Assembly: GCA_044892525.1 (NCBI GenBank)
Contig: CM097887.1
Span: 13,330,001 to 13,394,000, forward strand
Origin: Schmidtea polychroa
Taxonomy: Eukaryota
DNA length: 64,000 nt
Direction of reading: 5' to 3'
In this document: positions 11,321 to 51,015 of the stretch, piece after piece
How the letters are laid out: each line of letters begins with the position of its first letter
Position numbering within the stretch: position 1 is the first letter of the stretch
Program-made: the position numbers and the translations under genes
Notes under the pieces: generated by a model
Seen by the model: only the letters and a program-made list of their open reading frames with translations
Told to the model about the DNA's origin: nothing
Database searches by the model: none

Positions 11321-11442
11321 TGTGTGAAAAGTATTTCACAGTGCGTGTGTCCAAATTACATATTACGCAATTTATGATAAATAAAGGAATTTTTTAGGAT
11401 TTTTCATCACTTTTATATACCTAAAATTTTAAATTGAACAAA

Positions 11443-15790: not shown

Positions 15791-16053
15791 AAAAATTTGT
15801 TTTTACTCTTTTTTTAAGTGTTACATAAATTTTTATTTTGTTAGTGTTACTTGTGATAGTACACCATTTTTATGTTACTTTTAATAGTACACTATTTTTA
15901 ATATCACTAGTTAGTAAGAAACAAGTCCAATTAAAAAATTAACTATTATTTTTGGAAGCCCTTTGAAGGTTATTGACCCATCATATACCTTCGAGGTAAT
16001 GACCATCATATTTACCTCTCAAATACCTCTTGTTTGATATATATGTTACAGTG

Positions 16054-30990: not shown

Positions 30991-33397
30991 TGTTTATTTA
31001 TCGATTATGTAAATAATAAGTTTGTTTAAATATTCGTTATTCAATTTTAAATTTCAATAAAGATTATAATGGATAATATGTTCTGTTTTATGGTAATTAA
31101 TTAAAAGAATTTACATAAAACTGGGCAATTTCGCCACACAGCAAGAACTGTTTGTAAGCTACACTCTGCCCATTGTGGTTCACACACACGACTAATCGCA
31201 TTTTTTCGCTTTTTTATACATTATTTATAAAAATATAATTTATATAATAAATATATTAAAATGATAAATTAATATGAGTTGCTAAAAGTTAAATTACAAT
31301 TTTAAGATATCTTTGTAAAAATTGGATTGCAACACCAGATTTTCTTACATTACATTAGCTTAGCCGGACAAAATGCAATTAAATGATGTTTTTAAATAAT
31401 TATTCCAATTTCCAAAGGTTTTTATCAAATTCACTTGAAAAGGGTAGTGCCGAAAATTCGTGAATATCAAAAACGAACTTAATTATATTAATTATAGTAA
31501 GATATATACAATTAACGGTAATATTTCCCAGCTGCAAAAGATCTATAAAATAATACATAGTTCGTAAAGCTCGATTTGTTAAAAAATAACCAAACCACTT
31601 AATTTCGGTATTTATGATTATGGAAATTTTACAGCTTCAATCAAATATTTTCTAATTTTTTATTTCTAATTTGATTTGTTAAGAAATTTGTTCAACTATT
31701 CTAACGCAAGAAAATCTAAAATGCAAAGGCATTAATAGTTCAAAGTTCATTTTACAAAATCTAACAAATCAGACATTGGTCGATTCTTTTTTGCTAATCT
31801 ATAAAATAAATATTTTTGTAGTTATCAAAATTTCATTTCCTCTTACTTTATCGATTGATTTTGAAATAATTTTTGGTATGTGACAACGAAAACAACATCT
31901 TTTTTTTTAAATTAATTTTTTAATTAATAATCATTCATATTGCGTTTGGAAAAAAGGATTTTCAACGTTTTAGCAATCCGATAAACGATTACTTTTTTGT
32001 CCTCAAATCGACACGTCATTTTTTTTCACTTTCAAGTTCAGTGACATGAGTTTTAACTTTTTTCTTAACTTTTCCAATAAAGTTTAATAAATCTGACTGC
32101 CTTTACATTTTTAATGGGTAAATTTATTATGCAATTATAAAAAATAAATTGCTAAACATACATATTAGGATACGTGTATGCGTAAATCATCTTAATAGGC
32201 GAAATTTGCTTGACTGGGATTTTAAATCGTTCTGTACTCTGTATGATACAGAGAGACCAGTAACTTGCTCTCTAGCATTCCGTCTCATAATCGAATCTGT
32301 TTCCTGAAGTACAACTCTGAACTTGATTTATCCTTAAGATTTAAAACTTCAAACTTATCAATTTTAGAGTTTCTTTTGAATTAATTTGATACATGTAGAA
32401 TTCAGAGTTACTGTAATGTTCTTAAATTATTCATAAATGTGCAAAATGTTGTGAACATTTGAATTTTGAATGTTTTTAAATAGTTTGAGTGCTAAATTGA
32501 AGGTATGTGGATTGTTGTTGTTTTCAAAAGTATAAAATAGTTAAACTAATAATCTAAATAAAGCTGATTTAAGAATTTTTGAAAATATTTCTTTAAAAAG
32601 TTTCAAACTGAAAAATAATCGATTATTTAAATAAAATTTACATTTTTTAAAATTAATAGAAATGTTGTAATTTGTTTATTAAATTTATTTTTAGTTTTTC
32701 TATCATATTTGATAATGAAAGTAAAACTTGAAAATATATTGTGAAATGTATATTTGAGTGGTGTTTTTAATGAAAAAAATCATTGCTATATTTATTTAAT
32801 TATGTATGGATAATATTAATTATATTCTTTTTTATTTCTAAGTAAGGGTACGTGACGTCTGTCCATTTCGTTTAGCGTATGTCGCGCTTGAAAATGATAT
32901 AAAGAGACTATATAGCGATAATTTACCATAGTAAATTATCGCTATACAAATATTGAACAAAAACAAAAAAATCGATAAGAAGAATTAGAAATTCAAAGAT
33001 AAGAAAACAGAAAAACAGAATATTTACAGTCGGAAGTCCTGCTAAGCACCTATTAAAAAGCCATTCACAAGATTACTACAAAAGAAAAGGAAAACATATA
33101 ACTCTACTAGTTAATATATCAGTACAATATTTTAAAAATCGGGAACTTCAAAGTTAAAGAAAGAGGTCGTATGATAGATATATTTTTGACGCTAAGCAAA
33201 TTCATCCAAAAATTAATCGAAGAAATTTCAAGCTCAAGATTCTTTATCGAATCCTTCACCTCTATTATATAAATAAATTCGCTATTTGCGTTGGATCTTC
33301 GCAGTCAACTGTTCTGCAAATTCTGATATCATATCTATTTTCTGCAAGTAGGTAGTTATGTGCACTCTAGATCCATGTGCACTCTAGATCCAGATAC

Positions 33398-33437
<40 letters not shown>

Positions 33438-33994
33438 AAACCCCCCCCTACTTTTTTTTTTTTTTTTTTAATTTTTTAAAAGACCCCCCCCCCCATATTT
33501 TTTTTTTAAATTTAAATTTTTGTTTTAATTATCGATTACGTAATAATTTTATTTTTTGTTTTAATCATCGATTACGTAATAATTTAAAATTTTTTTAAAA
33601 CATCGATTACGTCATTGATTTTAATTTTTTATAAGAATTTTTTATGTCATTATACTTGAAATTTAATTCTCTGTTAAATGAGACTATGATGTAATCAAAA
33701 TTCTGAAATTTCATTTTTAGTACACGATTTTTAAATTTACACATCTTTTTAAACAAATTGAGATATTTTCACTCAAACAATATATAGATAGAATTTTAAT
33801 CTCTATAAAATGACATCAATATTTACTTCAAATTCATAATCATAACACCTTAAACAATGTATTTTTCAGCCAACTTTTACATACACACATATTTTCAACT
33901 TTTAAAAAATACAAATTAATCATCTATACTTAACTCATAGTAAATAATTATATTAAAAGACATATTAAAAGATGTATTAAAAACTAAACATTTA

Positions 33995-34468
33995 TTAAAA
34001 TCCCAGAGAAATTCGAGCACTATCTAATTTCCAAATCGGTGATATGACATCTTTCTCATCCATTTTATATCCCTGTATTGAAATATTTACAAACCAGCTT
34101 TCACCATCTTTATATTCAATTTCTTCAAAGGCATCATGAAAACGAGAATTTCGATTGTTGATGATTATATTTCCATTGCAACTTAGATTCTTATTGATTT
34201 TCCCCAACACTTTATTTACTGCAACAACATCTTCTTTTGTTATATGAGCAATGAAACTTGAATATTGCGACTTGATCAATTTGACTGCATTTGAGAATTT
34301 ATATGGAATTTCGTCTACCAAGAAATATATCTTATGGTTATGATACATTTGTACTGGTTTCACATCATTCTTGGCATGCTTCGTCTCAGTTATTTTCTTA
34401 ATTGGGCTTGTTTCTTTCAATAAATTAGAAAATGTTTTCTCACCAAAAACGTTCTTCTTGGATTGCAT
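33995..34468 (-). CDS. 157-aa TIR-encoded protein, left copy (unknown function)
   Basis: Translation identical to 47214..47687; ATG start, upstream TATA box, AATAAA overlapping the stop. Confidence 0.8.
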   Translation of the reverse strand: MQSKKNVFGEKTFSNLLKETSPIKKITETKHAKNDVKPVQMYHNHKIYFLVDEIPYKFSNAVKLIKSQYSSFIAHITKEDVVAVNKVLGKINKNLSCNGNIIINNRNSRFHDAFEEIEYKDGESWFVNISIQGYKMDEKDVISPIWKLDSARISLGF

Positions 34469-34505
34469 TTTTTAAAAATAATGACTATGATGTCATTTTA
34501 TCTCT

Positions 34506-34513
34506 CTTTTATA
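34506..34513 (-). promoter_or_regulatory. TATA box (TATAAAAG) of the left TIR gene
   Basis: Consensus TATAWAAR ~40 nt upstream of the ATG. Confidence 0.6.
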
Positions 34514-34826
34514 CTTGTGTATAACCAATCAAATGAATGCATTTGTATTGCAAACAACATGCATGTGTCATTGACCTTCGTGTGTGACCTTTGTATGTGA
34601 CCTTTACATTTGTGACCTTTGTATGTGAGTCATACATGGTTTGCATATGTATTGCAGATGTATTGCAAATTAGTTAATTAAAACGTGTACTAATTAGTGT
34701 GATATTAAAAATATTATACTAATACATGTAACATAAAAATACTATAACAACATAAAAATAGTGTACTATCACAAGTAACAATATAAAAATTTTGTAACGA
34801 TTAAAAATAGAATGAAAACAAATTTT

Positions 34827-37800
34827 TTATATCATAAAATTTATTAATTGACAACCATCATCATTTGGAAAATGAGGATGATATTGCAAATCTTCATCTG
34901 GATCAACTATGGGCAGCAACATTTCTTCATCAGAATCATCAGCCATAACCATACCACCCCCCCTATAATGACCATACGCATAACTTTTATTTTTAAGTAC
35001 CCAATTGCGCTTATCGTCAGCATTAGTTAAAGCCCTCTTATTATTTTTAATACTGAAAAGTTGATGGTTTTTACTCGTTATCCTAAATTGTGGTACTGTA
35101 TAAATCTCATTATTATTATAACAATTCAGATACGACTGATGAGTTAGTCCAGTATCTTTCATTGTGACCCCCTTCGCTTTCATACATCCCTTACTACCCT
35201 TCATGCTATAACATTTTGGTCTTAAAAATATCCATTCATCATATCCAAGACCTTTGCTTTCATCTTTAAATTTCCCTATTACAGAGTCAAGGTTTTTTGA
35301 ATATAATGAATGTGTTGGCTCGTAATTAGAGGTATCTAATAAATTATCCCTTATCATTGCGGGTAAAAGAGAATTTAATTTGCAATTTTTAATTTCCAAA
35401 AAGAACGAATCTGTATCCCCAGCAACTATATTAATTTTACAATTAAATTCTATACGATATTTTTCTAAATCAATGTACTGAAGTTGGTACATACGAAGTT
35501 TTGATAAATCCAAAACTGATTGACCAATATAACTTGGTCTATTTAAACATATTAAATCTTTTCTTAATAGAACAGATATTAAGTCGTCATCGATTTTAGT
35601 AGTCCTTTTGAAATTAGGTTTAGAACAATATGTTAATACCTTTTGGGCTGAATTGCAAAGTCTTAAATTAATTCGTTTCTTTAGGTTTTCGACAGTCTTA
35701 CCGTATAGACTGTTGTTTAATAGTTTAAAATAATTTTTATCTAATGTGTTTGTTGATGATGCCCTAAGTTGTGTGTTAGTATCTATATAATTTTTAAATA
35801 TTGATGACTGTTCAAATTGTATAGCGCGATGAATTTTAGTGACCTTTACCCCAATATTTAGATAAAGCTGGAGAAGTCTCCAATGAACTACATAATTCTT
35901 TTTAGGATAGTGGGTAAGCATCAACTTCTCCACTTTGGATCCTGGTGCACAGATCTTTTCAGCTGCAACAGGGAAATCGTCAAGCTTATCATGAATCGAT
36001 TCTGGAATTTCCAAATCGACTTCAACAGTATAACCGAATGTGAGTAATTCCAAGTCAACATTCATACAATCATCCAAAATCTTATTTAATTTTATTTCAT
36101 CGTTAATCCACTTAAAATTACCATCTGGTAGTTTCTGGCTAAGTGCCCAACCATATAGGTTGTTAATATCTATATAGAGCAACTCTGTGTTTTCATCTGA
36201 TTTTACGTAATGTTTATTAACAAATGTTAATCCCCCTCGAATCCCACCCTCAAAGAAATTATAAATCTCCATGTCTTGGATCAACTCAATTGGATGATCT
36301 AAAGTCATGAGTGCAGAGTTCCATGACATACCGGGAATGCCTAAAAAGTTTAAGGGTTCCAATCTGTTATGAGCTATTGATTTTGCTCTAAACTGTTGGA
36401 AATAGTCCGCAAGTAAAAAGACATCTAATTTTAAATATATCATCATGTAATCCAAAAGTGAATTACAATTATGGTCATCCCAAATGCGCTGAGCCATATC
36501 ATATTCTACTTCAGTAACACCATCCCAAATTGGAGGTAATTGGGGAGTTCCCTGAAGCACTTCTAAACTAGTTGCAAAATCATATGGGAATATGCCTTTA
36601 CTATTAACAATTACTCCGTTAAATTCAGAATTAGTCAATGGAAATGTAGTTAATGTTTGTACAGCATTTTTTAAGGAATCGTTAATAAATTGACAAGAAT
36701 CGATAAATTTTATAGTTAATCCATCAATTCTTGCATATAAACTTAAAAATTTTTCACTAGTTATAGGAATACAATTAATATTCCATGATTTAAATTTACC
36801 TAAGCCAAATTTGAGAATATGATGGAGATCATATCCTCTCAAATTATGAAAAATAACTGGTAAAACCGGTCTAATTCTTCGAGAAAGATTACAAGTTGAG
36901 CAAGCTGCACCTAAATATTTACCCGAAAAATGGTCATGATCTCTTACTGGATTTACTAAAGTTTTCTTACACAAATGACAATTTACAGCCGAAGAAAAGT
37001 TTATTTTGTCAATACTACTAAAAAACATCATTTTCCTATATCGTGTTTCAAAATATGGAGCCACTATTTGCTTACCAATTTCTTCAAGTTCATGAAGAAA
37101 CTGTTCAACACAATCCAATCCTATAAAACTTTTATAAAATTTATCCCCTGTAAAATTATTTATAAAAACAAAACCAGCTGAGATTGGTAAATGTTTTTGA
37201 TAGTATTTATTATCTTTAGGTAAAATTGCCTCAAAGTCGGCATAAATAACAAATGGAGGAGTGACAATCTTTGACCAATTTGTAAAACTAAGATATTTAT
37301 CTTCGGGTAATGTAAAGAGAGTGGTCCCTAACTGATTTTTATCACACAAACCCTTGTGTCTCATGAAAGAATTAGGATTTCGAAAACCATTTAAGCATCT
37401 CGAACACCATTTACTACAAATCCTAACAGCAGTTACACTAGAATCGTTACAATTCAAAAGTCTATCAAGATTAGTAACACCTATGTAATGATGTGTCAAA
37501 ATCTTCTAACAAAATTAAATTAATTGTTGTCCCCCCAATAACTTTAGATCGATAAATTATGTCAACATAAGGATGTTTCATAACTTCTTCAGTATTCTTA
37601 ACATCATTTAATATATTTTCGTTATAAGTTAAAACATTTATCGATAAACCAGGGTTTTGGGATTCAAATTTAGAAATATTACAAAGGCGCATAGGGAGAT
37701 CTGCAGGATCGAATTTTAATTCCGAAGTATTATAATTATATGGCTTAGATCTATTGGTACTAATACTATTATATTTCAAAATAGATAAAATACTATATAG

Positions 37801-38303
37801 GAAGCATTCATCATTTGTATTTTTAACATTAACAGTACATTTTTTATTTAATAATGTTTCTGGTGTAGGAATATATCCACGGCCAGTTAATCTGGATATT
37901 TGCGAATATTTTGTTATTATAAAACTAATATATTCAATTTTATGTATAACCCAGTTGCTTCCCTTTTCGTTAACTTTAATTATTTTTTCATTTAATAAAT
38001 CAATACCATCTTCTAAGAAGGTATCACTCATGGGTCTAGCAGAATTTGAAATAACGAATGATTGAAATTCGTCATCTTTTACAAATTCCACTTTCAAACA
38101 AAATTGAATTTTTATTGAACCCATCTCGGATGAAACTTTATTTAATTCATTTATTAACTGAGTAGGGATCGAAACTGTTTTTAAATTTAAGGATGAAACA
38201 TCCATTTTAACTTCTGCGTGTGTTTTATTTAAATCGAATATGGTTTCAGGTTCAAGTGAACCACCTTGTTGATTAATAATGACTTCTGTAGAAGTTGATG
38301 TAA

Positions 38304-38369
<66 letters not shown>

Positions 38370-38742
38370 AAAGTGAATAAGAGTTAACTATCAAAGGCAT
38401 GACCTCATCATCAGAGTCTGAAATAACGATAAGATCTTTTTTAACAAATTTAGAGGGTTTTAGATTAGGTAAATTAATTTTTCTTTTATTATTTACATTA
38501 GGCTTATTATTATTATTATTAGTACTTGTAGTATCATTATTATGATTTATAGCGGGATTATAGGTATTGGAAATATTATTTTTTAATAAATTAATAAGGT
38601 CTTTTTTCTTTAAATTATACTGAGTTAAATGATCCCTATGTTGATGATAAAACTCCATGTATGTTACAGTCTCGGGGTTCATACAAACAGGGCAAATAAA
38701 AAAGATGGTATGATTATGGCTATGTTTGTAATATTTTTCCAT
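34827..38742 (-). CDS. polB: Protein-primed family B DNA polymerase (N-terminal/TP region, OTU-like protease, exonuclease with EndoVII-like Zn finger, polymerase), interrupted by a 2-nt frameshift at ~37490
   Basis: YIDINNLYGWAL, KLLNNSLYGK, AGDTDSF, CHLC..RDHDH..G..C..CN; ORFs 34827..37499 and 37471..39000 join to ~1305 aa from the ATG at 38742 if 2 nt are restored; the true start could lie in the N-gap. Confidence 0.93.
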
Positions 38743-39325
38743 TATGAAATCACAATCATCATGTAATGAACTATTACAATAATTTTGNNNNNNNNNNNNN
38801 NNNNNNNNNNNNNNNNNNNNNNNNNNNNNNNNNNNNNNNNNNNNNNNNNNNNNNNNNNNNNNNNNNNNNNNNNNNNNNNNNNNNNNNNNNNNNNNNNNNN
38901 NNNNNNNNNNNNNNNNNNNNNNNNNNNNNNNNNNNNNNNNNNNNNNNNNNNNNNNNNNNNNNNNNNNNNNNNNNNNNNNNNNNNNNNATATTTTTATCAA
39001 AAAGGTAATTTTACTTAAATATATTTAACCTATTACATAATAGTTTAAACATACTTAATGCAAAATATATTTACCCTATTACGTAATAGTTTAAACATAA
39101 TCAATACAAAATATATTTAACCTATTATATAATAGGTTAAATATATTTTCAATCAAAATAAATTATTGATAAAAATAAATTTAACTTGTTACATAATATT
39201 TCATTATTATTATTATTATTCAAAGTACTATATTATAATTATTGTATTTAAAGTATTAATTATTATTAAAATAAAAACATTAATAAATCTTTTAATAAAA
39301 CCTTATAAAAATTCATTAAAAATCT

Positions 39326-39704
39326 TTAAATAAAAATGAAAATCTTACATGTAACTTTTCTTTTTGATATTTTGCAATCATTTTTTCCATATGCAGTACT
39401 GCGCGCAATCAAATTGTTACCATTATTATTGTTATTTGTACTTGACTCGTTCATATTTCGTCCATTTATAATGCATCCATTCATGTTGTTTATAATAAAA
39501 TCTAAAAAGAATAAATAATTATAAATTTAATAATAATAACGAAATACCATTTGGCATGTTTTCACTGTTATTGTTAGATCTTTTGTTGAAATTACGATTA
39601 AGACCTATAAATTATATCAATAATAATGACAAATAAATAAATAAATAAATCTTACCATTCTTGACACTGTTTCCGCTTTGGCTTCCTTGATTATTTCTTG
39701 ACAT
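39326..39704 (-). CDS. Three-exon, 93-aa Asn-rich protein (exons 39704-39656, 39604-39548, 39501-39326), not in the ORF track
   Basis: ATG, then GTAAG..TTATAG (51 bp) and GTATTT..TTTTAG (46 bp) introns give a continuous frame MSRNNQGSQSGNSVKNGLNRNFNKRSNNNSENMPNDFIINN...; same structure in the second copy at 11443. Confidence 0.7.
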
Positions 39705-40024
39705 TTTGTTGAGTTTAAAATTTTAGGTATATAAAAAAGTGATGGTATATTTTTAAACATTGCTTTATATATCATAAATTGTGTAATATGTATTCACCCA
39801 ATAGAAATTGAGAGTATTACATGCACACGCACTATGAAATATAATTTACACACAATGTGAAATACTTTTCACACATTAGGAAGCAAAACTTACACACATT
39901 ACAAAATAAAAATTTAACACAAACTAAGAGAACATGATTAATCATGCATTTAAACTGCAATCTTAATGCATATGAGTAATAATAACAAAATTAATAATAA
40001 TATAATTTTTAATCAAAAACTTTA

Positions 40025-40444
40025 TTAATTTTTTAAATAATCTAACACAGCAATTAAACAATTTTTGTAAGCACAATTAGAATGATCACGGTAAGGACAC
40101 AAGATATTATCAGGAAAATATTCTGATAATTGGATTGAATATTTTATTAATCTTAAATTTGGGAAATAATTTTTCAAAACTGTAAGTTTATCTTGATCAG
40201 TGACATAGAAAATTCCACTTGTATCTTCTACATCTCTCAATATACATGTTGGACAAAACGAATCTTCACCTTCATACCATTCCAATCGATCTGAATTTTC
40301 ACGTCCAGCCCAAAATGGTAAATCATTAAATAACCAATACTTTGGGCGTAAAATATTATTTACATTCATAATACATAATTCTTTAATAATTATTCCACCA
40401 GCATAATCATTATAACCTACAAAGTCAATAAAATAACAAGACAT
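40025..40444 (-). CDS. DEDD-fold / Maelstrom-like small protein, probably catalytically atypical
   Basis: N-terminal IDFVGY...IIKELCI and C-terminal CPYRDH..CAYKN; homologous pseudogene at ~9756-10160. Confidence 0.55.
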   Translation of the reverse strand: MSCYFIDFVGYNDYAGGIIIKELCIMNVNNILRPKYWLFNDLPFWAGRENSDRLEWYEGEDSFCPTCILRDVEDTSGIFYVTDQDKLTVLKNYFPNLRLIKYSIQLSEYFPDNILCPYRDHSNCAYKNCLIAVLDYLKN

Positions 40445-40476
40445 TTTTATTAATAAGATTTATTAAACTACATCGT

Positions 40477-40858
40477 TTATACATATAACATTGAATTTAG
40501 CCATGCAAGGCAATGTTGACCACATGTTTGAGTCATTGGATTTTGATAACGAATTTTATTATACAGAAGGGGTTTACCAACTGTTTGTAGTTTTGTTATC
40601 ATTATATCTGGATAATAATATCCCATCGGATCAAAAACATGTATTTTATCAGGTTTCACATATATTGCAATCCAATGTTCTCCTTCAAGATTTGATGATT
40701 GAGTATTGACGACTATAGCTTGGTTTGCGTTCAGATAGGGGATTTTATCTAATGGGAATACTCCAGTAAACTGATTCCCCAACAACATTTTTCCAATTCG
40801 ATTAACCTGAATAGAACTAATCAAATAAAATTAATTATTAATTAAAAACTTACTCCAT
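40477..40858 (-). CDS. Adenain-like cysteine protease (Maverick PRO) with a short 5' intron
   Basis: GVFPLD, GEHW, FDPMG, QNP..QTCGQHC catalytic motifs; ATG GA|GTAAGT...GATTAG|T TCT gives MDSIQVNRIGK (37-bp intron), or ATG 40874 with a 47-bp intron gives METIYYGVNRIGK. Confidence 0.9.
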
Positions 40859-40923
40859 AATAAATTGTTTCCATTGTTTAATTCATTTATACTACGTTTA
40901 AACCAATACAGTTTGAAATACTT

Positions 40924-42147
40924 TCAAACCAATACTGATCGACTTGCAGTAATTTGTAATTCTCTTTCGAAAACTCCGTATACTATTACATAAACCGATT
41001 CCTCGAGTGATTTATTAAACTTTACACTCAATTTTAAATTTCCTTGTTGTGGTAATTGACTTTGATTCAAATCAAAATCTGGAGACAAAACAAATGTAAA
41101 GAATGGATATTTATCTTTAAAATCTTCAAGTGTAATCCCACAGTTCATGTTTTTATCCAAATACCCCAGATTTCTCACAATACTTTGCATATACGTTGTA
41201 GTATAATCATTTGTGTCAAAGTTTTGTGTATATGTTTCTCGATAGTCATTATTTTTGGCTAAAGTGATTGATGTAATATCCAAATGTTTAAAGATTGAGC
41301 TGGATTCCTTATATGTTCCCTTAAATTGAGATTCAGTTTGAAATGCCACTAAAACGAAATTTGGTAATCTTTTGTCAATAAATAATTGTTCCTTGTAAAA
41401 TGACGATGAACCTTTACTGATTGTAAAGTCGACAGTTTCTTTACTTCTAATTGGATATATAGCATTTTTAGAATTTAACCCTATTTGATGCCCTGCTAAA
41501 ACTGATGGTTCAACTCGAACTCTGCGAATCATTAATTTTGCTTCCAATACCTTTATCTTTGGTTCATCTGTTAGCGAATGTATACTGAATGATGATGGGT
41601 TTCTTTTCAGTGTTACATTAACATTAACTCCTGGAAGTAAATATTTTGGTTGATCCATAAAATCTATTTGCAATGACGAACATAGGGAAACTAATTTAGA
41701 ACCGGCAATTAATGCTGTTCTTTCCTTATCAGATGGAATGTAACCCATAGGAGCCAGACAAATGTTTTTACTATCTCCATTATAATTTAAAATAGTTTCA
41801 ATTAAAGCTTTTTGTGTATATCTTCCGTTTCCACCTTCAATCTTTTGACTATTGAGTCCAACAATAACATCACTAAAAAGTGTATGGAACAAGTAATTGT
41901 TAGCTTTTGCATCTGAAGTAACCGGTAATTCCTTTCCATTATTATTTGTAACCTTTAATTTAATGTAGAGTAATGTATCATTCAAATCGAGATATTCAGT
42001 ATGAGAACCAGTTATTTTGAATTCAATATCGCTTTTATTATCAACAATTGAATTAAAGGGGAATACGTCTTCAAATGTCGCATATTCTATAACCGCCTGA
42101 GGAGTCGGTCGATCAAAAATACATAATTCAGTTTTTCCACAAATCAT
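40924..42147 (-). CDS. Major capsid protein (double jelly-roll, Maverick PY/hexon-like)
   Basis: KTELCIFDRPTPQ..IE, IEFKITG..EYLDLNDT, PFFTFVLSPD match the Maverick MCP pattern; position next to PRO. Confidence 0.88.
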   Translation of the reverse strand: MICGKTELCIFDRPTPQAVIEYATFEDVFPFNSIVDNKSDIEFKITGSHTEYLDLNDTLLYIKLKVTNNNGKELPVTSDAKANNYLFHTLFSDVIVGLNSQKIEGGNGRYTQKALIETILNYNGDSKNICLAPMGYIPSDKERTALIAGSKLVSLCSSLQIDFMDQPKYLLPGVNVNVTLKRNPSSFSIHSLTDEPKIKVLEAKLMIRRVRVEPSVLAGHQIGLNSKNAIYPIRSKETVDFTISKGSSSFYKEQLFIDKRLPNFVLVAFQTESQFKGTYKESSSIFKHLDITSITLAKNNDYRETYTQNFDTNDYTTTYMQSIVRNLGYLDKNMNCGITLEDFKDKYPFFTFVLSPDFDLNQSQLPQQGNLKLSVKFNKSLEESVYVIVYGVFERELQITASRSVLV

Positions 42148-42530
42148 TTTTCGAATATAGTTCCACGTCCTGTCATTCGTTTGTTTATATACCTTCGATG
42201 TTTTCTTCGCTTAGGCTGTGGTTCAGACTCTTCAGATTCTGATGCTTCATTTGATCCCATTACATTTGGTAATGAAGAAATCACATCTGGTAATGCCTCT
42301 TTGAATTCAGATATGGCATTGGATTTTAAAGATGGTAATATTTTTGCATTATTCATTATTACATCTTTAGCTGTTTTCATACCAAAATTTCCTATACGTT
42401 TAAGAATAGGAAGAGCAAACCGACCAATAGTTTTTAACCATCCGGATCCATATTGTTTGCCAACAAAATATGGTAATTCGCCACCAGTTTGACTATTGGC
42501 ATAAAGAGAAACTATATCAGGATTAGACAT
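42144..42530 (-). CDS. 128-aa putative virion core / membrane-lytic protein (adenovirus pVI-like layout)
   Basis: QTGG and QYGSG motifs, amphipathic segment WLKTIGRFALPILKRIG, basic NLS-like PKRRKHRR, C-terminal MTGRG. Confidence 0.65.
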   Translation of the reverse strand: MSNPDIVSLYANSQTGGELPYFVGKQYGSGWLKTIGRFALPILKRIGNFGMKTAKDVIMNNAKILPSLKSNAISEFKEALPDVISSLPNVMGSNEASESEESEPQPKRRKHRRYINKRMTGRGTIFEK

Positions 42531-43539
42531 CTTGTTTTCTAAAATGTAAAGTTACGTGTGTTTTTGAATCGTTTGCAAATCGGATTAAATTTCCGCTATC
42601 ATCGCGTATATTAATTTCTATATTGTTTATACATGTTCTCCCAACTGGTAAATACATAGGATTTTCTATTTGTATTTGCACAACTTCATCTTGCTCATAT
42701 TTCTTAATCCACACCGCTTTCAGAAGAGGTACCAGTGAATCACCAACATTTATCGGATCAATAATATCGCTATAGATGAACATTTGTTGATGATGATTAA
42801 ATATTTTTCCTTTACGAACTCCACCAAATTGTTTGTCATTATATAATTGTTTTTGTAATCCAAATGTGTTGACCAAGTTTTTATCAAATATAACTTCTTT
42901 AATGTTTTCACCGAGACTGAATTTGAAGACATTTTCATTCAGTTCAACAGACTTGAAAATATGGGGGCAATTACTTGTTAAATAGTTGGTTAAATCTTCA
43001 AGCTTCTTTATGTATAAATCATCAGTAAATGTGAAAACTGAATCTTGTAAACAATTGTACGTTAACTTCATTCTAATTACATTATTCATAATGCCATCAA
43101 CATACGGCGGAATTACAATTTGAAATGTATCAGTGTGACTTATAATTGTTGGTTCAGGAACTCCTAATCTTTTTACGCTTGCATCTTCAAATGTTATCTC
43201 GAATGGATGGTAATCGCAACAAATATTTAAAACTCCCTTGGTAATATACATGTAACAATCATTATTTAATTCTTTTATTGTCGTTTCATCATCTTCGGGT
43301 TCAATAACATAAAAGCTGCTAACTGATTTCGATGCAATTTCTTTATATTCAATCTTAGAATTACTGTAAAATGGAAATGTATTGTACACAAATGTGTAAT
43401 CAAGCAAAGCAACTTCCCACATGTCATGCAGGTAAATGGGATTTTGTAACTCAACGATAAATTTACTAGCCTCATTATTCGGATGAATTAATGGACAGCT
43501 ATTGCTTGGTAAAATAGTGAAAAAATTGTTTCTATTCAT
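42523..43539 (-). CDS. Minor capsid protein (penton, Maverick PX)
   Basis: FFTILPSNS..HPNN..F.V.L...WEVAL; C-terminal FIYSDII.P..VGD..PLL, YLPV, IEINIRD, LHFR. Confidence 0.88.
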   Translation of the reverse strand: MNRNNFFTILPSNSCPLIHPNNEASKFIVELQNPIYLHDMWEVALLDYTFVYNTFPFYSNSKIEYKEIASKSVSSFYVIEPEDDETTIKELNNDCYMYITKGVLNICCDYHPFEITFEDASVKRLGVPEPTIISHTDTFQIVIPPYVDGIMNNVIRMKLTYNCLQDSVFTFTDDLYIKKLEDLTNYLTSNCPHIFKSVELNENVFKFSLGENIKEVIFDKNLVNTFGLQKQLYNDKQFGGVRKGKIFNHHQQMFIYSDIIDPINVGDSLVPLLKAVWIKKYEQDEVVQIQIENPMYLPVGRTCINNIEINIRDDSGNLIRFANDSKTHVTLHFRKQDV

Positions 43540-44555
43540 TCAATTTGAGATGCTGATATCCAAGTTGGGTTTTGATATCCATGCCATTTGACGTAATATT
43601 GTTTATCCTTACCTTTATATTTTGATTTAAGAATTTTTTCAATTCTAAAGACAGATGGTGTCGGAATAACTTGCAGTTCCTGTTCGTAAAATTTACCCTG
43701 GATTTCATTATTATCAATATCTTTAATAACATACATAACGGGACTCTGTTTCGTATTAATCTTCGATATTTGAAAGACTTCGTCACTCCAGTTGTTGTCA
43801 AAATTTTTAATGAATGGTGAAGCCGATATTTTACTTATTCTAACATGATCACCAACTTTATATTTAGGTTTCTTAATTTTTGTTACATCTTGTTGTGATA
43901 ATAATATTTTCATACTATTTTTAGATGTTACATCAATCGGTCTCATACCCTTTAGACCTCCATGTTCGGAATGATTGTAACTATGAATTATTTTCGGTAA
44001 AACATTTATCCAAGTTTTGTTACCTTGATGTACAAAATATTTTTTCAATCGATCTCTTAATGTTCTATTAAACCTTTCCACATGAGCAGCTTTGAATTGT
44101 GAAAAAACAGAGTAATGATTTATTCCCTTTAGATTTTCTTTAACTTTGCTATTATAAAATTCTTTACCCAAATCAGTTTGTAAATTATCTGGTTTACCAT
44201 TTTTAAACATTGTTTTTATTGCAACAGCCATTTCACTAGCAGATTTGGTTTTCAATGGTATAGCTCGAGCAAATCTACTAAAGACATCAATACATGTCAA
44301 AATATATTTGTAACCCTTATTAATTTTAGAAAATGGAATCATTTCCATTAAGTCCATTTGCCATAAATCATTAATACCATATGTTTTATATGCTCTTGTG
44401 GGAAACCGTTTCAACATTGGCTTGTTTAAATTGTATGCCAGTTGACTCGACAACCATTTTTGAGTCTCCTTTTTTGATTTGGGTACTTTTTTCTTTAACT
44501 TTTCGACTCCACCGAAACCGGCTGGATCTTTTGGGTTTGTCCATATCTTCTCCAT
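43536..44555 (-). CDS. Retroviral-type (rve) integrase with C-terminal chromodomain
   Basis: WQMDL, LQTDLGKEF, HVERFNRTL DDE triad; FRIEKIL...YYVKWHGY..PTWI chromodomain. Confidence 0.95.
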   Translation of the reverse strand: MEKIWTNPKDPAGFGGVEKLKKKVPKSKKETQKWLSSQLAYNLNKPMLKRFPTRAYKTYGINDLWQMDLMEMIPFSKINKGYKYILTCIDVFSRFARAIPLKTKSASEMAVAIKTMFKNGKPDNLQTDLGKEFYNSKVKENLKGINHYSVFSQFKAAHVERFNRTLRDRLKKYFVHQGNKTWINVLPKIIHSYNHSEHGGLKGMRPIDVTSKNSMKILLSQQDVTKIKKPKYKVGDHVRISKISASPFIKNFDNNWSDEVFQISKINTKQSPVMYVIKDIDNNEIQGKFYEQELQVIPTPSVFRIEKILKSKYKGKDKQYYVKWHGYQNPTWISASQIE

Positions 44556-44653
44556 TACAACACGATGATTTAAAATTTAGAATAAGGTTTGGTAAATGTC
44601 CCATAGGTAATTGACCCATTGTTTATGATGATGATATTAAAATAATTCAACGT

Positions 44654-44986
44654 TTATGAAGGCTCACCTAATAAACCAGATCCACCTAATAAAGATAATG
44701 CGATTGGTATCAAAGCTGATATAAACCCCCCTTTCTGTTTGTATATAATTTTTCGCATTATACGTTTATTTTTTGTATTTACTAACGATAAAAGTGATTT
44801 TTTATGGTTTTGCAATACAAGTTTTTTCGCTTTACTAATGTCAACATTGCCACGCACAACATTAACAATAATTTCAAGCAAATCGTCCACAACAAATTGT
44901 GGGAATGATTGTAAAATACTTGTTCTTTTCATGAGTGGTGCTTTTATCAATGCATTAAAATATGGTATACTACGTTGTAATTTCAT
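44654..44986 (-). CDS. 110-aa conserved Maverick small protein with QKGGF motif and hydrophobic tail
   Basis: LLEII.NVVRGNV..HKKSL..QKGGFISALIPIAL resembles the small ORF common upstream of Maverick integrases. Confidence 0.7.
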   Translation of the reverse strand: MKLQRSIPYFNALIKAPLMKRTSILQSFPQFVVDDLLEIIVNVVRGNVDISKAKKLVLQNHKKSLLSLVNTKNKRIMRKIIYKQKGGFISALIPIALSLLGGSGLLGEPS

Positions 44987-45019
44987 TATTGAAATTTATT
45001 TTTTATCGTTTAACTTTGT

Positions 45020-45190
45020 TTATAATTTAATCCATTTTTTAGGTGTTTTGATTGATCTTTTCTTCAACGTTTTCTTTACAGATTTCTTTACTATCTTTTT
45101 TATAGATTTCTTTACATGTTTCTTTACACGTTTCTTCTTCACTTTGACTAATTGATTATCATGTTTAATTAAAACTTTCTTGAACCCCAT
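45020..45190 (-). CDS. 56-aa Lys-rich basic protein (histone-H1/protamine-like), below the ORF-track cutoff
   Basis: MGFKKVLIKHDNQLVKVKKKRVKKHVKKSIKKIVKKSVKKTLKKRSIKTPKKWIKL*: 23 Lys, 2 Arg, 1 Asp; fills the gap between ATPase and the 110-aa gene on the same strand. Confidence 0.75.
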   Translation of the reverse strand: MGFKKVLIKHDNQLVKVKKKRVKKHVKKSIKKIVKKSVKKTLKKRSIKTPKKWIKL

Positions 45191-45214
45191 TTTTTATTAT
45201 AATAGATTCATAAT

Positions 45215-45838
45215 TTAATTTTGTTTATAAACTGTTACACCATCTTTATTAAAAATATCTGTCCTAATACGTACATCATCCATGCATTGCTGAGTAAAAT
45301 CAAAGAATAAATATCCATGGGGTATTTTGGTTGCATCTTGAAATGATTCAATTAGAAAGTTACGATTGTTTGGATATGCTTGTCTTGCAATGAAATCAAT
45401 AACAGTTGCATCCCTCGGATTTTTGAAAATAACAAGATATTGAACATTCAAGTTCCGAGTTCGATGACTCCCACCCTGATGAAACAGATTTTGTGTTATA
45501 AAAATAACTGTTACACCATGATGTCGAGATATTTTTGTAAATAAATTATTAAAATCTTTTTCTTTGTTAGCTTCTTGATATAAATCATCAATAATAATTA
45601 CATCACCCTGTTGTAATCTAGATGACCAGTTTTTATCAAATCCTTTTATTATTGTCATTTTTAATTTACAGAATTGTTCTTGCGTCAAACCATGTTCGTC
45701 ATCAGCACCCCTATGCCAATATATTTTATTGAATTTTGACTTGAACATTTTTGATTGTAATAATTTACAAACAAATAAAGTTTTACCACTACCGCTTGGA
45801 CCTACAATTTGATAAACAGCATCATTTCTTAATTCCAT
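45215..45838 (-). CDS. A32/FtsK-HerA-like genome-packaging ATPase
   Basis: Walker A GPSGSGKT, Walker B IIIDD, SRH..VTVIFITQNLF. Confidence 0.93.
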   Translation of the reverse strand: MELRNDAVYQIVGPSGSGKTLFVCKLLQSKMFKSKFNKIYWHRGADDEHGLTQEQFCKLKMTIIKGFDKNWSSRLQQGDVIIIDDLYQEANKEKDFNNLFTKISRHHGVTVIFITQNLFHQGGSHRTRNLNVQYLVIFKNPRDATVIDFIARQAYPNNRNFLIESFQDATKIPHGYLFFDFTQQCMDDVRIRTDIFNKDGVTVYKQN

Positions 45839-45923
45839 TTTAAAAAATTAGTTATATATATTAATATTGTTTATATTTGTTTTAATTCATCAGTTTACTT
45901 GATGAAAAATTATTTGAAAAAAT

Positions 45924-46388
45924 ATGATTAGTAATATAAATTATAAAGGTAGATTTGATGTATCTCATATGGAATTTCCAAAAGGTAAACCACAACAAAT
46001 TGTTGACAGAAGCGGTAAACATTCAATAATATTTTTCAAGTCAGGTAAATGTCGAATAATGGGATGTAAAAAATCGATCAAAGTTGAAGATTTAAAATAT
46101 GAAATCAAGGATTTACAAATTCAATCGATTACAGTTACTGCTGATATTGAATCAAATGTTATTTTAAATGATTTATCAAAGTATATGAAATGTATTTACG
46201 AACCAGAAATATTTCCGGCATTAAGATATATAAAATACAATCCAATGTGTGTTAACATATTCAATAGTGGTAAAGTAGTTATACTCGGTATAAAGACATT
46301 GGATTATCATTTACTTGTTTATAAAATTATTAAAGATATTAAATCAGTAATTGATGACATGGAATTTTTAAAATTTTTCCTAAACTAA
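45924..46388 (+). CDS. Compact TATA-box-binding protein (TBP) homolog
   Basis: Two TBP repeats: IFFKSGKCRIMG and IQSITVTADI...YEPEIFPALRY...NIFNSGKVVILG, against canonical IFSSGKMVCTG / IQNMVGSCDV / YEPELFPGLIY / IFVSGKVVLTG. Confidence 0.88.
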   Translation: MISNINYKGRFDVSHMEFPKGKPQQIVDRSGKHSIIFFKSGKCRIMGCKKSIKVEDLKYEIKDLQIQSITVTADIESNVILNDLSKYMKCIYEPEIFPALRYIKYNPMCVNIFNSGKVVILGIKTLDYHLLVYKIIKDIKSVIDDMEFLKFFLN

Positions 46389-46499
46389 AGTTGCAATCGT
46401 CCATGCATGAATCCAATTGGTTGATGGTGTGTATCGAAATAAGTATATATATATATATATACAATAACACTTTAATCATTTATTAAGTACTAGTTGAGA

Positions 46500-46877
46500 A
46501 TGTCAAATTTAACTGTAAATGGTATATTTTGATTATTGCTTTTTATATTTATAATTTTAAATGTTTTAGAAAAAATGATACAGATTCTGATTGGGAAAAT
46601 GGGGGAATTATATCCGAATATTTTAAAGGATCTAATCTATTGGGCACCAGAGATTATTCCATTCAGAATATGGATGTCTACCGGAATAGATTTGAATGTG
46701 GTTTTGTTTGATCACTTGAGGACGTTAGAAGACGATCTTGACCCTGTTGACAGCAGCAAGCCATCAGTATGCCCATACAAATGCGAAGGATGTATTGATA
46801 GAGAGAAGAAGTATAATATATGGATATTAAGGAAAGAGTTGAGAAAAGCTCACTTTTCATTAATTGTAGATCACTAA
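46500..46877 (+). CDS. 109-aa hypothetical protein with a 48-bp 5' intron (exons 46500-46521, 46570-46877)
   Basis: ATG TCA AAT TTA ACT GTA AAT G|GTATAT...TTTTAG|AA AAA ATG joins in frame to ORF 46536..46877; YWAPE motif, CPYKCEGC, AATAAA overlapping the stop. Confidence 0.65.
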
Positions 46878-47049
46878 TAAATGTTTAGTTATTATAATAC
46901 AGTGTTTTCTAATTTTATATTGTTACTTGTGATAGTACACTATTTTTATGTTACATGTATTAGTATAATATTTTTAATATCACACTAATTAGTACACGTT
47001 TTAATTAACTAATTTGCAATACATCTGCAATACATATGCAAACCATGTA

Positions 47050-47110
47050 TGACTCACATACAAAGGTCACAAATGTAAAGGTCACATACAAAGGTCACAC
47101 ACGAAGGTCA
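47050..47110 (+). promoter_or_regulatory. Cluster of AAAGGTCA (x3), GAAGGTCA and TGACTCA motifs upstream of the TIR gene (mirrored at ~34572-34632)
   Basis: Motifs read directly from sequence; they match nuclear-receptor extended half-site and AP-1 consensus; function inferred. Confidence 0.4.
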
Positions 47111-47168
47111 ATGACACATGCATGTTGTTTGCAATACAAATGCATTCATTTGATTGGTTATACACAAG

Positions 47169-47176
47169 TATAAAAG
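47169..47176 (+). promoter_or_regulatory. TATA box (TATAAAAG) of the right TIR gene
   Basis: Consensus TATA ~40 nt upstream of ATG 47214. Confidence 0.6.
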
Positions 47177-47213
47177 AGAGATAAAATGACATCATAGTCA
47201 TTATTTTTAAAAA

Positions 47214-47687
47214 ATGCAATCCAAGAAGAACGTTTTTGGTGAGAAAACATTTTCTAATTTATTGAAAGAAACAAGCCCAATTAAGAAAATAACTGAGACG
47301 AAGCATGCCAAGAATGATGTGAAACCAGTACAAATGTATCATAACCATAAGATATATTTCTTGGTAGACGAAATTCCATATAAATTCTCAAATGCAGTCA
47401 AATTGATCAAGTCGCAATATTCAAGTTTCATTGCTCATATAACAAAAGAAGATGTTGTTGCAGTAAATAAAGTGTTGGGGAAAATCAATAAGAATCTAAG
47501 TTGCAATGGAAATATAATCATCAACAATCGAAATTCTCGTTTTCATGATGCCTTTGAAGAAATTGAATATAAAGATGGTGAAAGCTGGTTTGTAAATATT
47601 TCAATACAGGGATATAAAATGGATGAGAAAGATGTCATATCACCGATTTGGAAATTAGATAGTGCTCGAATTTCTCTGGGATTTTAA
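47214..47687 (+). CDS. 157-aa TIR-encoded protein, right copy (unknown function)
   Basis: Translation identical to 33995..34468. Confidence 0.8.
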   Translation: MQSKKNVFGEKTFSNLLKETSPIKKITETKHAKNDVKPVQMYHNHKIYFLVDEIPYKFSNAVKLIKSQYSSFIAHITKEDVVAVNKVLGKINKNLSCNGNIIINNRNSRFHDAFEEIEYKDGESWFVNISIQGYKMDEKDVISPIWKLDSARISLGF

Positions 47688-48248
47688 TAAATGTTTAGTT
47701 TTTAATACATCTTTTAATATGTCTTTTAATATAATTATTTACTATGAGTTAAGTATAGATGATTAATTTGTATTTTTTAAAAGTTGAAAATATGTGTGTA
47801 TGTAAAAGTTGGCTGAAAAATACATTGTTTAAGGTGTTATGATTATGAATTTGAAGTAAATATTGATGTCATTTTATAGAGATTAAAATTCTATCTATAT
47901 ATTGTTTGAGTGAAAATATCTCAATTTGTTTAAAAAGATGTGTAAATTTAAAAATCGTGTACTAAAAATGAAATTTCAGAATTTTGATTACATCATAGTC
48001 TCATTTAACAGAGAATTAAATTTCAAGTATAATGACATAAAAAATTCTTATAAAAAATTAAAATCAATGACGTAATCGATGTTTTAAAAAAATTTTAAAT
48101 TATTACGTAATCGATGATTAAAACAAAAAATAAAATTATTACGTAATCGATAATTAAAACAAAAATTTAAATTTAAAAAAAAAATATGGGGGGGGGGTCT
48201 TTTAAAAAATTAAAAAAAAAAAAAAAAAAAAAGTAGGGGGGGGGGTTT

Positions 48249-48287
<39 letters not shown>

Positions 48288-48782
48288 GGTATCTGGATCT
48301 AGAGTGCACATGGATCTAGAGTGCACATAACTACCTACTTCTGCAGTATTACTTATTTTTTTGATTAATAAAATTCGTAATTTTATTTAACTGTTATTTT
48401 GCACCTTTTTCTACACAACACGCACCCCGATTGTCCCGCCACATTTTTTAACGGTGATTCTATCGGGTCCTTCAGATCTCCTTACACACGCATGCACTTA
48501 CCAACAAAAATTTATAATATAATCCATATACAACACATATATAATATAATACCATCGAAACCTCCAATCATAATAATTATGTATGGATTTTGTTTATTTT
48601 ATTTATTATTATATGCCAAAATATATTTTTAAAAAGTCGAAAATTAGGTTAATTATTGGATTTTATGTTATTATTACACACCGCAACAATAGCCCAATTT
48701 GAATGTTCTGAACTATAAATCGCAAAGGTTCGTCATAAGTGGAATTAGTAATTTAATGTTTTATTATTCAAGAATTTGAGTA

Positions 48783-50507: not shown

Positions 50508-51015
50508 TTAATATATAAATCTTATTTTCTGGCAATTTTGTGTTGTTTTTTTTTATCTTTTTAAATTTAGTTTAGTTGGTATTGTAAAGTGTTTTTAATT
50601 TAACTTCACTTTGCTGTATTCCTTGGTTTGAACATTTTAATGGGACAAGTAAGGGAAAACAGTATAAACGATTATTGGTTACTGATATACAGATTGAAAC
50701 ACCAATTTTTGGCAAAGTCATGCCTCGAAATCGGTTCAGGCAAATATTAAAATCGTTACATTTTTGTAATAATGATGAAAACGCAGATCGACTCTTTAAA
50801 ATTGAACCAGTAGTAGAATATTTTTTAAATAAATTTTATACAGTTTATAAACCAAAACTAAATCTTTCTTTGGATGAGGCAATCATACCCTACAGAGGCC
50901 AGCTAAGTTTCCGTGTTTACAACCCAGGAAAGATTAATAAATATGGCATGCTTGTCAGAATGCTTTGCGAATCTAAAAGTGGATACATAACTAACTTTAA
51001 AATCTATAGCGCTAG

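Follow-up and report, generated by a model that had tools for sequence, protein, structure and literature searches.

What does a gene for a TATA-binding protein (TBP) do inside a mobile element that has to borrow the transcription machinery of its host? The question is raised by a Maverick/Polinton element in a 64,000-nt stretch of Schmidtea polychroa DNA (hereafter the window; GenBank assembly GCA_044892525.1, contig CM097887.1, positions 13,330,001 to 13,394,000 of the forward strand), which holds an open reading frame (ORF) for a TBP-like protein of 154 amino acids (aa). To our knowledge, Mavericks and Polintons are thought to be nuclear, polymerase-less viruses or transposons that encode no RNA polymerase and must use host RNA polymerase II (Pol II), and we know of nothing on how their expression is controlled. 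We report here that the ORF encodes a minimal TATA-binding protein and that this is a long-standing gene in one Maverick/Polinton clade. We further propose, with a probability of roughly 0.5, that the element encodes in this protein a promoter-recognition factor for host Pol II, whose most likely targets are late promoters. The gene and the limits of the element, including its target-site duplication (TSD) and terminal inverted repeats (TIRs), are given below in window coordinates.

45924..46388 (+): minimal TBP gene; repeat 1 is residues 1-48, the linker 49-61 and repeat 2 residues 62-154
33347..48339: Maverick/Polinton element, 14,993 bp, with TIR pair, TSD and hallmark genes
33341..33346: left TSD, TCTGCA, read from the sequence
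48340..48345: right TSD, TCTGCA, read from the sequence
33347..34788: left TIR, ~1.44 kb, 98.2% identical to the right TIR over 1448 columns
46913..48339: right TIR, from the inverted-repeat alignment

The length of 14,993 bp follows from the TIR pair, which is flanked by a perfect 6-bp TCTGCA direct repeat, and by every defining feature tested the element is a Maverick/Polinton. The TIR tips (33347-33520 and 48170-48339) carry two tandem copies of a 17-nt unit and, after these, runs of C that alternate with runs of T. The TBP ORF runs from ATG to stop with zero internal stops. A preliminary description of this DNA had placed an intact 154-aa ORF within a TSD-bounded element, and the ORF, the TIR pair and the TCTGCA duplication all bear this out.

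We evaluated the identity of the protein by sequence and by fold. Against Pfam, it matched the TBP family (PF00352) in two stretches at 56.4 bits (E 2.7e-15), where the curated cut-off is 22.9 bits. A phmmer search of Protein Data Bank (PDB) sequences matched 35 distinct TBP chains and nothing else of note; the archaeal TBPs of Methanocaldococcus (E 2e-15) and Sulfolobus (E 9e-13) ranked highest, followed by microsporidian, plant, yeast and human TBPs. A profile of the family reached PDB TBPs with E-values down to 5e-21 and scored archaeal TBPs at 78-74 bits and eukaryotic TBPs at 70-56 bits, with giant-virus TBPs more distant. An exact-sequence look-up of the window TBP found no record. The structure was modelled with AlphaFold2 (AF2) from a family alignment of 54 sequences, the same 54 that underlie the residue counts given below, and the model reached a predicted local distance difference test (pLDDT) score of 96.1 and a predicted template-modelling (pTM) score of 0.85. 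Comparison of this model with the PDB in Foldseek gave 44 matches at E<1e-3, all of them TBPs, with probability 1.0 and template-modelling (TM) scores of 0.6-0.69. These alignments cover whole TBP cores of 170-180 aa at 20-27% identity, and several of the matched structures are of TBP in DNA or TFIIB complexes. The AF2 model and the Foldseek comparison support, for the 154-aa protein, the saddle fold with its two pseudo-symmetric beta-sheet halves. With that pLDDT and with TBPs alone among the significant fold matches, the stripped-down, Maverick-encoded TBP of drastically reduced N-terminal lobe that had been proposed from the sequence is a genuine TBP-fold protein. We are close to certain that the ORF is a real, selected TBP-fold gene of the Maverick lineage.

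The two repeats of the protein differ in their architecture. In the AF2 model repeat 2 (62-154) is complete, comprising S1', H1', S2', the stirrup, S3', S4', S5' and a long H2'. In repeat 1, DSSP assigns strands to residues 2-10, 25-28, 34-38 and 42-48, and it assigns no helices. Both H1 and H2 are thus absent from it, and the full S1-H1-S2-S3-S4-S5-H2 set is found only in repeat 2. A 12-residue connector (11-22) replaces H1 and S2 of repeat 1, of which S2 is probably lost, and a 13-residue linker (49-61) occupies the place of H2. Between S1 and the conserved Pro, repeat 1 has 22 residues where repeat 2 has 35, a difference of 13, and the inter-repeat segment of ~19 residues is ~12 shorter than the ~31 of canonical TBP. 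The length deficits given in the preliminary description were about right, but repeat 1 is not merely shorter, since both of its helices are gone. At the level of sequence, both repeats of PDB TBPs align to the C-terminal half of the family profile only (positions 59-146), and the N-terminal half of the family is too derived for alignment on its own. When the two halves were compared with each other by hhalign, the local alignment was significant (E 6e-6) and paired P23 with P98, F38 with F113 and G47 with G122. It alone was significant, a global alignment of the N-terminal with the C-terminal half being meaningless. We also left unused an ungapped phmmer alignment of repeat 1 to a microsporidian TBP, in which the SGK register conflicts with both the family conservation and the model.

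Three of the four DNA-kinking Phe had been reported as kept, and across the family these are near-invariant: F38 is found in 53/54 sequences, and F97 and F113 in 54/54 each. The fourth position, which is homologous to F97, is K22 in repeat 1 and is Lys or Arg in 48/54. Four residues upstream of K22, and off the homologous position, lies the aromatic F18 (Phe or Tyr in 53/54), which might substitute for the fourth kinking Phe. The acidic stirrup aligns to the YEPE of archaeal and eukaryotic TBPs, as had been noted, and is also near-invariant, with E93 in 52/54, P94 in at least 90%, E95 in 53/54 and F97 in all. N4, the minor-groove Asn of S1, is kept in repeat 1 in 53/54 sequences. On the concave face of the same repeat R44 and M46 are invariant, at positions that hold small or hydroxyl residues in PDB TBPs. 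On average, the commonest residue accounts for a share of 0.65-0.78 in the strands and stirrup, 0.36 in the connector 11-22 and 0.29 in H2'. This pattern of conservation indicates that the targets of selection are the concave sheet and the stirrup rather than the convex top.

The gene is not confined to the window. A word-indexed search returned 88 TBP homologues of 97-199 aa, the best at 66% identity and all from metagenomes or run assemblies, and an exhaustive profile search gave 59 clusters (50% identity) at E<1e-30. Of the 150 best profile matches, most span a protein of 130-200 aa from end to end as a single match. We examined the genes around the homologues in TBP-anchored loci, made up of 79 metagenome loci and context contigs, and at least one other Maverick hallmark gene was present in 31 of the 37 with a length of 3 kb or more. 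Four nearly identical contigs of 13.7-16.3 kb from separate European Nucleotide Archive (ENA) assemblies (L001-L004) carry family-B DNA polymerase (PolB), capsid, chromodomain integrase, ATPase, a Bcl-2 homologue and TBP in this order, an arrangement like that of the window, and three further loci (L005, L006 and L007) have the same gene set. In all seven, the TBP homologue adjoins the ATPase, integrase, protease or PolB gene. Overall, the TBP gene takes at least four positions, but in none of these arrangements is it missing: it diverges from the ATPase, precedes it on its upstream side, follows the pair formed by the protease and the conserved ORF o139, or follows PolB. A search anchored on the capsid gene instead found a TBP gene on 4/4 long contigs, in one of them in pieces.

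Several of these loci hold genes of other kinds near TBP. In L001-L004 a 125-aa Bcl-2-family gene (PF00452; 9398-9775, +) stands between ATPase and TBP; the window element has none. A RING-finger gene adjoins TBP in L005 (6320-6742, +), and a MATH/TRAF-domain gene lies beside a TBP gene in pieces in L089 (3952-4941, +). Locus L088 (GCA_031406105.1, JANOGQ010000345.1) is a 12.7-kb contig that is almost wholly one element of the clade, and its TBP gene (150 aa, 39% identity) lies between a protease-like ORF and the o139 homologue.

The TBP gene diverges together with the core genes of the element. The identity of TBP to its window counterpart is correlated with that of the ATPase (Spearman rho 0.79), integrase (0.90), capsid (0.87) and PolB (0.75), which argues for co-divergence rather than repeated capture. 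Nei-Gojobori dN/dS for TBP is 0.05-0.45 over pairs with dS of 0.06-1.1; pairs with L083-L087 (omega ~0.9), which are distant partial matches, were disregarded. Complete TBP ORFs are present in 72/88 loci, and the remainder are mostly cut by contig ends. The survey of homologues and dN/dS that the preliminary description had called for therefore shows a syntenic, co-diverging gene under purifying selection, and contradicts its alternative of a recent neutral capture. Scans of IMG/VR with the TBP and capsid alignments found no member of either family. The sole match of the TBP scan there (L008, UViG 3300020438_000074, 9803-10351, +) is a canonical two-repeat TBP of 182 aa (124 bits) and is unrelated; its contig also carries ribonucleotide reductase, PolB and heliorhodopsin-like genes.

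We then evaluated the promoters of these elements. In 185 non-redundant regions, each the 100 nt upstream of an element ORF, 6-mers were counted against their own reverse complements. The most strand-asymmetric were TATAAA (80 forward, 30 reverse complement), ATAAAC (61 and 12) and TAAACA (55 and 17), and all three peak at -40 to -31 from the ATG. The heptamer TATAAAC at -50 to -28 is divided by gene class: it precedes the ATPase in 15/24, protein X in 9/13, the capsid gene in 6/13 and o139 in 9/16, and was found there in none of the TBP (0/48), integrase (0/16) or o338 (0/14) upstream regions. In TATA-anchored late promoters C occupies box position 7 in 37/48 and A position 8 in 39/48, and the box lies 35-39 nt from the ATG in 25/48. 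A TATA also stands before the TBP gene in 28/48, but with C at position 7 in only 1/28 and with a G just before the box in 14/28. This split of TATAAAC between gene classes points to two promoter classes in the same elements, the variant box marking virion genes.

The late TATAAAC(A) boxes lie 35-42 nt before virion-gene ATGs, and five are found in the window element. There, 5 of 8 minus-strand TATAAAC sites are 37-42 nt before an ATG, an arrangement that 0/20,000 random placements reach. Over the whole window the TATAAAC count is that expected by chance, and the position relative to the ATG alone is informative. The sites are listed here with the intergenic region that separates ATPase and TBP and with a further octamer discussed below.

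45839..45923: divergent intergenic region between ATPase and TBP, 85 bp, containing the late-type motif of the ATPase
45869..45875 (-): TATAAAC, 37 nt upstream of the ATPase ATG
45223..45229 (-): TATAAAC, 39 nt upstream of the ATG of a 56-aa basic ORF
45018..45024 (-): TATAAAC, 38 nt upstream of the ATG of a protein-X-like ORF
42183..42189 (-): TATAAAC, 42 nt upstream of the major capsid protein ATG
40475..40481 (-): TATAAAC, 37 nt upstream of the ATG of the 139-aa ORF
47169..47176 (+): TATAAAAG, 45 nt upstream of the ATG of a 157-aa ORF within the TIR; mirror copy at 34506-34513 (-)

The octamer TATAAAAG had been put forward, from its presence in both TIRs, as a viral TATA promoter. It is indeed there, but it stands before one TIR gene only, and with 9 occurrences in the window against 9.5 expected it is at chance frequency and carries no weight by itself. 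The positioned TATAAAC(A) is the real signal.

These data allow us to propose a mechanism for the minimal TBP. In cellular TBP the C-terminal lobe is the adapter for TFIIB-type factors, which it contacts through the acidic stirrup, and in TBP-DNA crystal structures the N-terminal repeat covers the 3' half of the TATA box. It is in this 3' half that the late box departs from the canonical TATA pattern. The N-terminal lobe of cellular TBP is where TFIIA, TAF1, Brf1/2, Mot1/BTAF1 and NC2 dock (PMC7221094). Given that the Maverick protein has kept the adapter lobe and the sheet, has lost the regulatory helices and has a re-equipped DNA face on repeat 1, and that the late box varies in its 3' half, we propose a factor that directs host Pol II to element promoters. 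With its DNA-binding beta-saddle and its C-terminal adapter lobe (stirrup, H1' and H2') kept, the minimal TBP would bind TATA-type promoters of the element and would bring in host TFIIB and Pol II in the absence of those host factors for which the N-lobe is the docking site. Its likeliest targets would be the TATAAAC(A) boxes of the packaging ATPase, the two core proteins, the major capsid protein and the 139-aa ORF. Host TBP would start transcription of the TBP gene itself, from a different TATA that lacks the C, and the outcome would be a two-step programme from early to late, resembling that of the herpesvirus viral TBP (vTBP) mimics. A role of the protein in transcription from element promoters is about an even chance in our estimate, and its specificity for the late box is a more tentative suggestion. 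Equally tentative is the fullest form of the proposal. In this form the whole Maverick/Polinton clade would run a self-contained two-tier programme on host Pol II, in which an early TBP with a helix-less N-lobe, the smallest known with two lobes, would use the Arg, Met and Lys of repeat 1 to read a TATAAACA box ~37 nt before every virion-gene ATG, and capsid production would be turned on independently of the regulators of host TBP and be insulated from them.

A number of observations weigh against this proposal. Judged by homology, the protein retains no more than three of the four Phe. The S1' Asn of PDB TBPs is Ser in 53/54 family members, and both S5 Thr positions are hydrophobic, with Leu for the S5' Thr. 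With Phe, S1' Asn and S5 Thr contacts all changed, TATA binding of the canonical type is not assured. The saddle might also be compromised, to judge by the model, by the loss of S2 and both repeat-1 helices, and the root-mean-square deviation of the model from PDB structures in Foldseek is ~5 Å. We infer DNA binding, TFIIB binding, the class of promoter read and insensitivity to host regulators alike. The association with the late box was drawn from TBP-bearing elements alone, and the upstream region of the window TBP gene has no well-placed TATA. Finally, the C(-25) of the adenovirus late promoter presumably falls at the same box position as the C of TATAAAC. According to its title, PDB entry 1qn3 is a crystal structure of wild-type plant TBP with the adenovirus late TATA box in a C(-25) variant, and host TBP could therefore read TATAAAC itself.

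This last point bears on the first of the other explanations, that the minimal TBP serves all TATA promoters of the element, and perhaps host ones, with no late specificity. Host TBP would then read the same boxes, and the advantage of the element-encoded protein would be that N-lobe regulators cannot evict or block it. Besides the crystallisation of cellular TBP on a C(-25) box, this explanation is favoured by the TATA type of both promoter classes and by the absence of the N-lobe helices from the AF2 model, the N-lobe being the regulator interface in cellular TBP and its signature residues being missing from viral TBPs (PMC7221094). However, position 7 is C in 37/48 late promoters and in only 1/28 TBP promoters, which suggests two recognition modes, and the invariant R44, M46 and K22 of repeat 1 are not needed by a generic TATA binder; we consider it unlikely. 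We give about half that weight to a decoy that shuts off the host, in which the protein would titrate TFIIB or occupy host TATA boxes unproductively and so depress host or defence transcription. A conserved TFIIB-type stirrup combined with a missing surface for TFIIA and TAF1 is what such a decoy might look like. Yet the whole concave sheet, repeat 1 included, is conserved more strongly than a TFIIB trap requires, and the dedicated, positioned promoter box in the same elements would be left unexplained. Germ-line damage to host transcription by an integrated element would, moreover, presumably be counter-selected.

The saddle could also act outside transcription, bending A/T-rich DNA for terminal replication initiation, integration or packaging. 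The neighbourhood of the gene in many loci, next to the ATPase and at the inner edge of the TIR, would fit such a role, as would the A/T-rich TIRs with their T and C tracts, whereas the four arrangements of TBP, some of them far from the ATPase, the lack of any conserved TATA-like site seen at the element termini and a conserved acidic stirrup that would have no obvious role argue otherwise, and this explanation seems to us as improbable as the decoy. That the gene is a functionless fragment of host TBP, recently captured or decaying as a passenger in this copy, is scarcely credible. The gene is truncated relative to cellular TBP and the polymerase gene of the window copy is broken, so that the copy itself may be inert, but the same short architecture recurs in ~90 homologues and is accompanied by the dN/dS of 0.05-0.45, the co-divergence with core genes and the complete ORFs in 72/88 loci described above. 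A promoter-recognition factor for host Pol II remains the explanation that we favour.

The other genes of the element, with the exception of one TIR copy, lie on the minus strand.

45215..45838 (-): packaging ATPase of the A32/FtsK type, 207 aa; Pfam Pox_A32, 26.7 bits, with P-loop
45020..45190 (-): very basic ORF of 56 aa, mostly Lys/Arg/Val; late motif 39 nt upstream
44654..44986 (-): adenovirus protein X (mu)-like ORF, 110 aa; syntenic in relatives
43536..44555 (-): retrovirus-like integrase with C-terminal chromodomain, 339 aa; rve 41.9 bits, Chromo 26 bits
42523..43539 (-): o338, conserved ORF of 338 aa; 23-53% identity in relatives by tblastn
42144..42530 (-): conserved ORF of 128 aa, present in relatives
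40924..42147 (-): double jelly-roll major capsid protein, 407 aa; AF2 model (pLDDT 88.8) and Foldseek
40477..40824 (-): ORF of 115 aa with adenain-like (Peptidase_C5) N-terminal match; Pfam 21.8 bits against a cut-off of 21.3, marginal
40025..40444 (-): o139, conserved ORF of 139 aa with its own late-type motif; conserved in relatives
34827..39000 (-): protein-primed PolB gene; 33-64% identical to the PF03175-bearing PolB of relatives (L001, L005, L006 and others)
47214..47687 (+): 157-aa TIR ORF, right copy, wholly inside the right TIR
33995..34468 (-): 157-aa TIR ORF, left copy, wholly inside the left TIR; two copies per element

The window ATPase is 36-90% identical to the TBP-adjacent ATPases of relatives. 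The 56-aa basic ORF, which has a 53-aa ORF at its place in L001, is probably a DNA-condensing core protein. Its protein-X-like neighbour matches Adeno_PX at E 0.084 in the window, and the homologue in L007 is also a weak Adeno_PX match. No match to o338 was found in Pfam or among PDB sequences, and from its position only we infer that it may be the minor capsid (penton) protein. The major capsid protein was identified through its fold, a sequence search against the PDB being empty: its best Foldseek matches are Vp54 of Paramecium bursaria chlorella virus 1 (PBCV-1), the capsid protein of the iridovirus SGIV and the major capsid proteins (MCPs) of Sputnik and mavirus, with E-values down to 5e-16. 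Peptidase_C5 was also flagged in L088, and the 115-aa and 139-aa ORFs are separate in all relatives, so the split is a shared gene structure and not a break in this copy. The PolB reading frame is broken once in the window copy and contains one masked N-run; the N-terminal third of its larger ORF piece has a sub-threshold match to Endonuclease_7 (E 1.2e-3, 19.1 bits against a cut-off of 23.6). The 157-aa TIR ORF has no Pfam family and no word-level homologues, and weak homologues of it (25-36% identity) adjoin TBP in ~25 related loci. It may be the gene that the preliminary description had called MAEL-like and had joined with TBP in an anti-silencing module, though nothing supports that name. 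No Maelstrom match was found among the element ORFs, whether in those of at least 56 aa at E<=0.01 or in eight ORFs at E<=5, and the module is accordingly without support.

The remainder of the window, whose DNA is AT-rich (29.7% GC), is occupied by other mobile DNA. A second copy of the element at ~9116-15916 is inverted, partial and more decayed, 83-96% identical in blocks and with several N-runs. It spans the polymerase to the start of the capsid gene, without integrase, ATPase or TBP, and together with TIR-like tandem repeats at 7802-8193 it extends over ~7800-15916. The flanks carry genes of two pogo/Tc5-type transposases, a Ty3-type RNase H/integrase, a piggyBac-type fragment and a hAT transposase with a BED finger; ordinary host genes were not seen in them, and Rfam gave no matches on the window.

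1972-3812, 24865-26571, 50675-51145, 51417-53205 and 55644-56975: flanking mobile-element genes

If the proposal is true, a self-encoded TBP and a positioned box before virion genes would be the first concrete handle on Maverick regulation, and the question of when and how endogenous Mavericks switch on their capsid genes would become testable with expression and structural data. The protein would also represent a natural deletion experiment, in which the saddle and the TFIIB adapter lobe were kept and the two helices of the regulatory lobe discarded. It would define a minimal functional core and would bear on the evolution of lobe asymmetry in TBP. Virus-encoded TBPs, so far those of giant viruses and herpesviruses, would now also be represented among the smallest members of the double jelly-roll lineage.

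Compared with cellular TBP (PF00352), the Maverick protein has the same saddle, with a complete second repeat, the YEPE..FP stirrup and the repeat-2 Phe pair, and in repeat 1 the strand Phe of F-x-SGK and the S1 Asn. It differs in its length (154 aa against a canonical core of ~180 aa), in a repeat 1 without H1, H2 and probably S2, in the Lys at the fourth Phe with an aromatic four residues upstream, in the Ser that replaces the S1' Asn, in the invariant Arg and Met on the repeat-1 concave face and in being encoded by a mobile element. The TBPs of giant viruses (Nucleocytoviricota) are likewise virus-encoded, with a TBP fold and a divergent N-lobe, and Foldseek against BFVD matched those of Heterosigma akashiwo virus, Terrestrivirus and mimivirids and asfarvirus B263R-like proteins with E-values down to 7e-9. 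These are longer, however (190-550 aa), and at 9-22% identity are below the 20-27% of cellular TBPs. They also work with a virus-encoded RNA polymerase in cytoplasmic factories, where the Maverick has none. Giant-virus TBPs have been inferred to evade the host regulators of the N-lobe (PMC7221094).

The closest parallel for the proposed way of working is with the late-gene TBP mimics of herpesviruses, ORF24 of KSHV (Kaposi's sarcoma-associated herpesvirus), UL87 of human cytomegalovirus (HCMV) and BcRF1 of Epstein-Barr virus (EBV). According to the published accounts, these read a variant TATA on late genes and bring in host Pol II (PMC7498053, PMC12529657). The Maverick TBP has weak fold matches to proteins of the UL87/BcRF1 family (E 6e-3 to 2e-2) and no sequence relationship with these mimics. 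Each mimic is a large protein of several domains that binds directly to Pol II and depends on five partners, in contrast to the bare 154-aa saddle with a TFIIB-type stirrup found here.

In the literature on Polintons, Mavericks or adintoviruses with TBP or TATA, the only relevant item found was a gene label: the legend to Fig. 5 of Starrett et al. 2021 (Virus Evol 7:veaa055; bioRxiv 697771) has TBP on maps of MELD viruses. The preliminary description had placed TBP homologues outside the standard Polinton gene set; given this label, TBP is not entirely uncatalogued in such elements. As far as that legend goes, the MELD viruses are adintovirus-like PolB/integrase elements from non-animal datasets, with TBP near accessory genes such as TRAF. 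In that legend TBP is a figure label only, without architecture, conservation, distribution or promoter analysis, and it may or may not denote the Maverick TBP family; the TRAF label there has a counterpart in the MATH/TRAF gene beside the TBP remnant of L089. As regards Adintoviridae, which are marked by adenovirus-like virion accessory proteins and an animal host, the clade shows a weak Adeno_PX match (E 0.084 in the window) and, in L001-L004, the Bcl-2 homologue.

TRF2/TBPL1 and Giardia TBP are described as divergent TBP paralogues that redirect promoter choice (PMC4422821, PMC12209930). Both reportedly keep the full two-repeat alpha/beta structure and have lost the kinking Phe. The Maverick TBP is the opposite, with three or four aromatics kept and helices lost. 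Virus-encoded TBPs, and the idea that they escape regulators of the N-lobe, are already known from giant viruses; what is new here is a first repeat without helices, the status of TBP as a co-diverging core gene in a Maverick clade and a class-specific, positioned promoter box.

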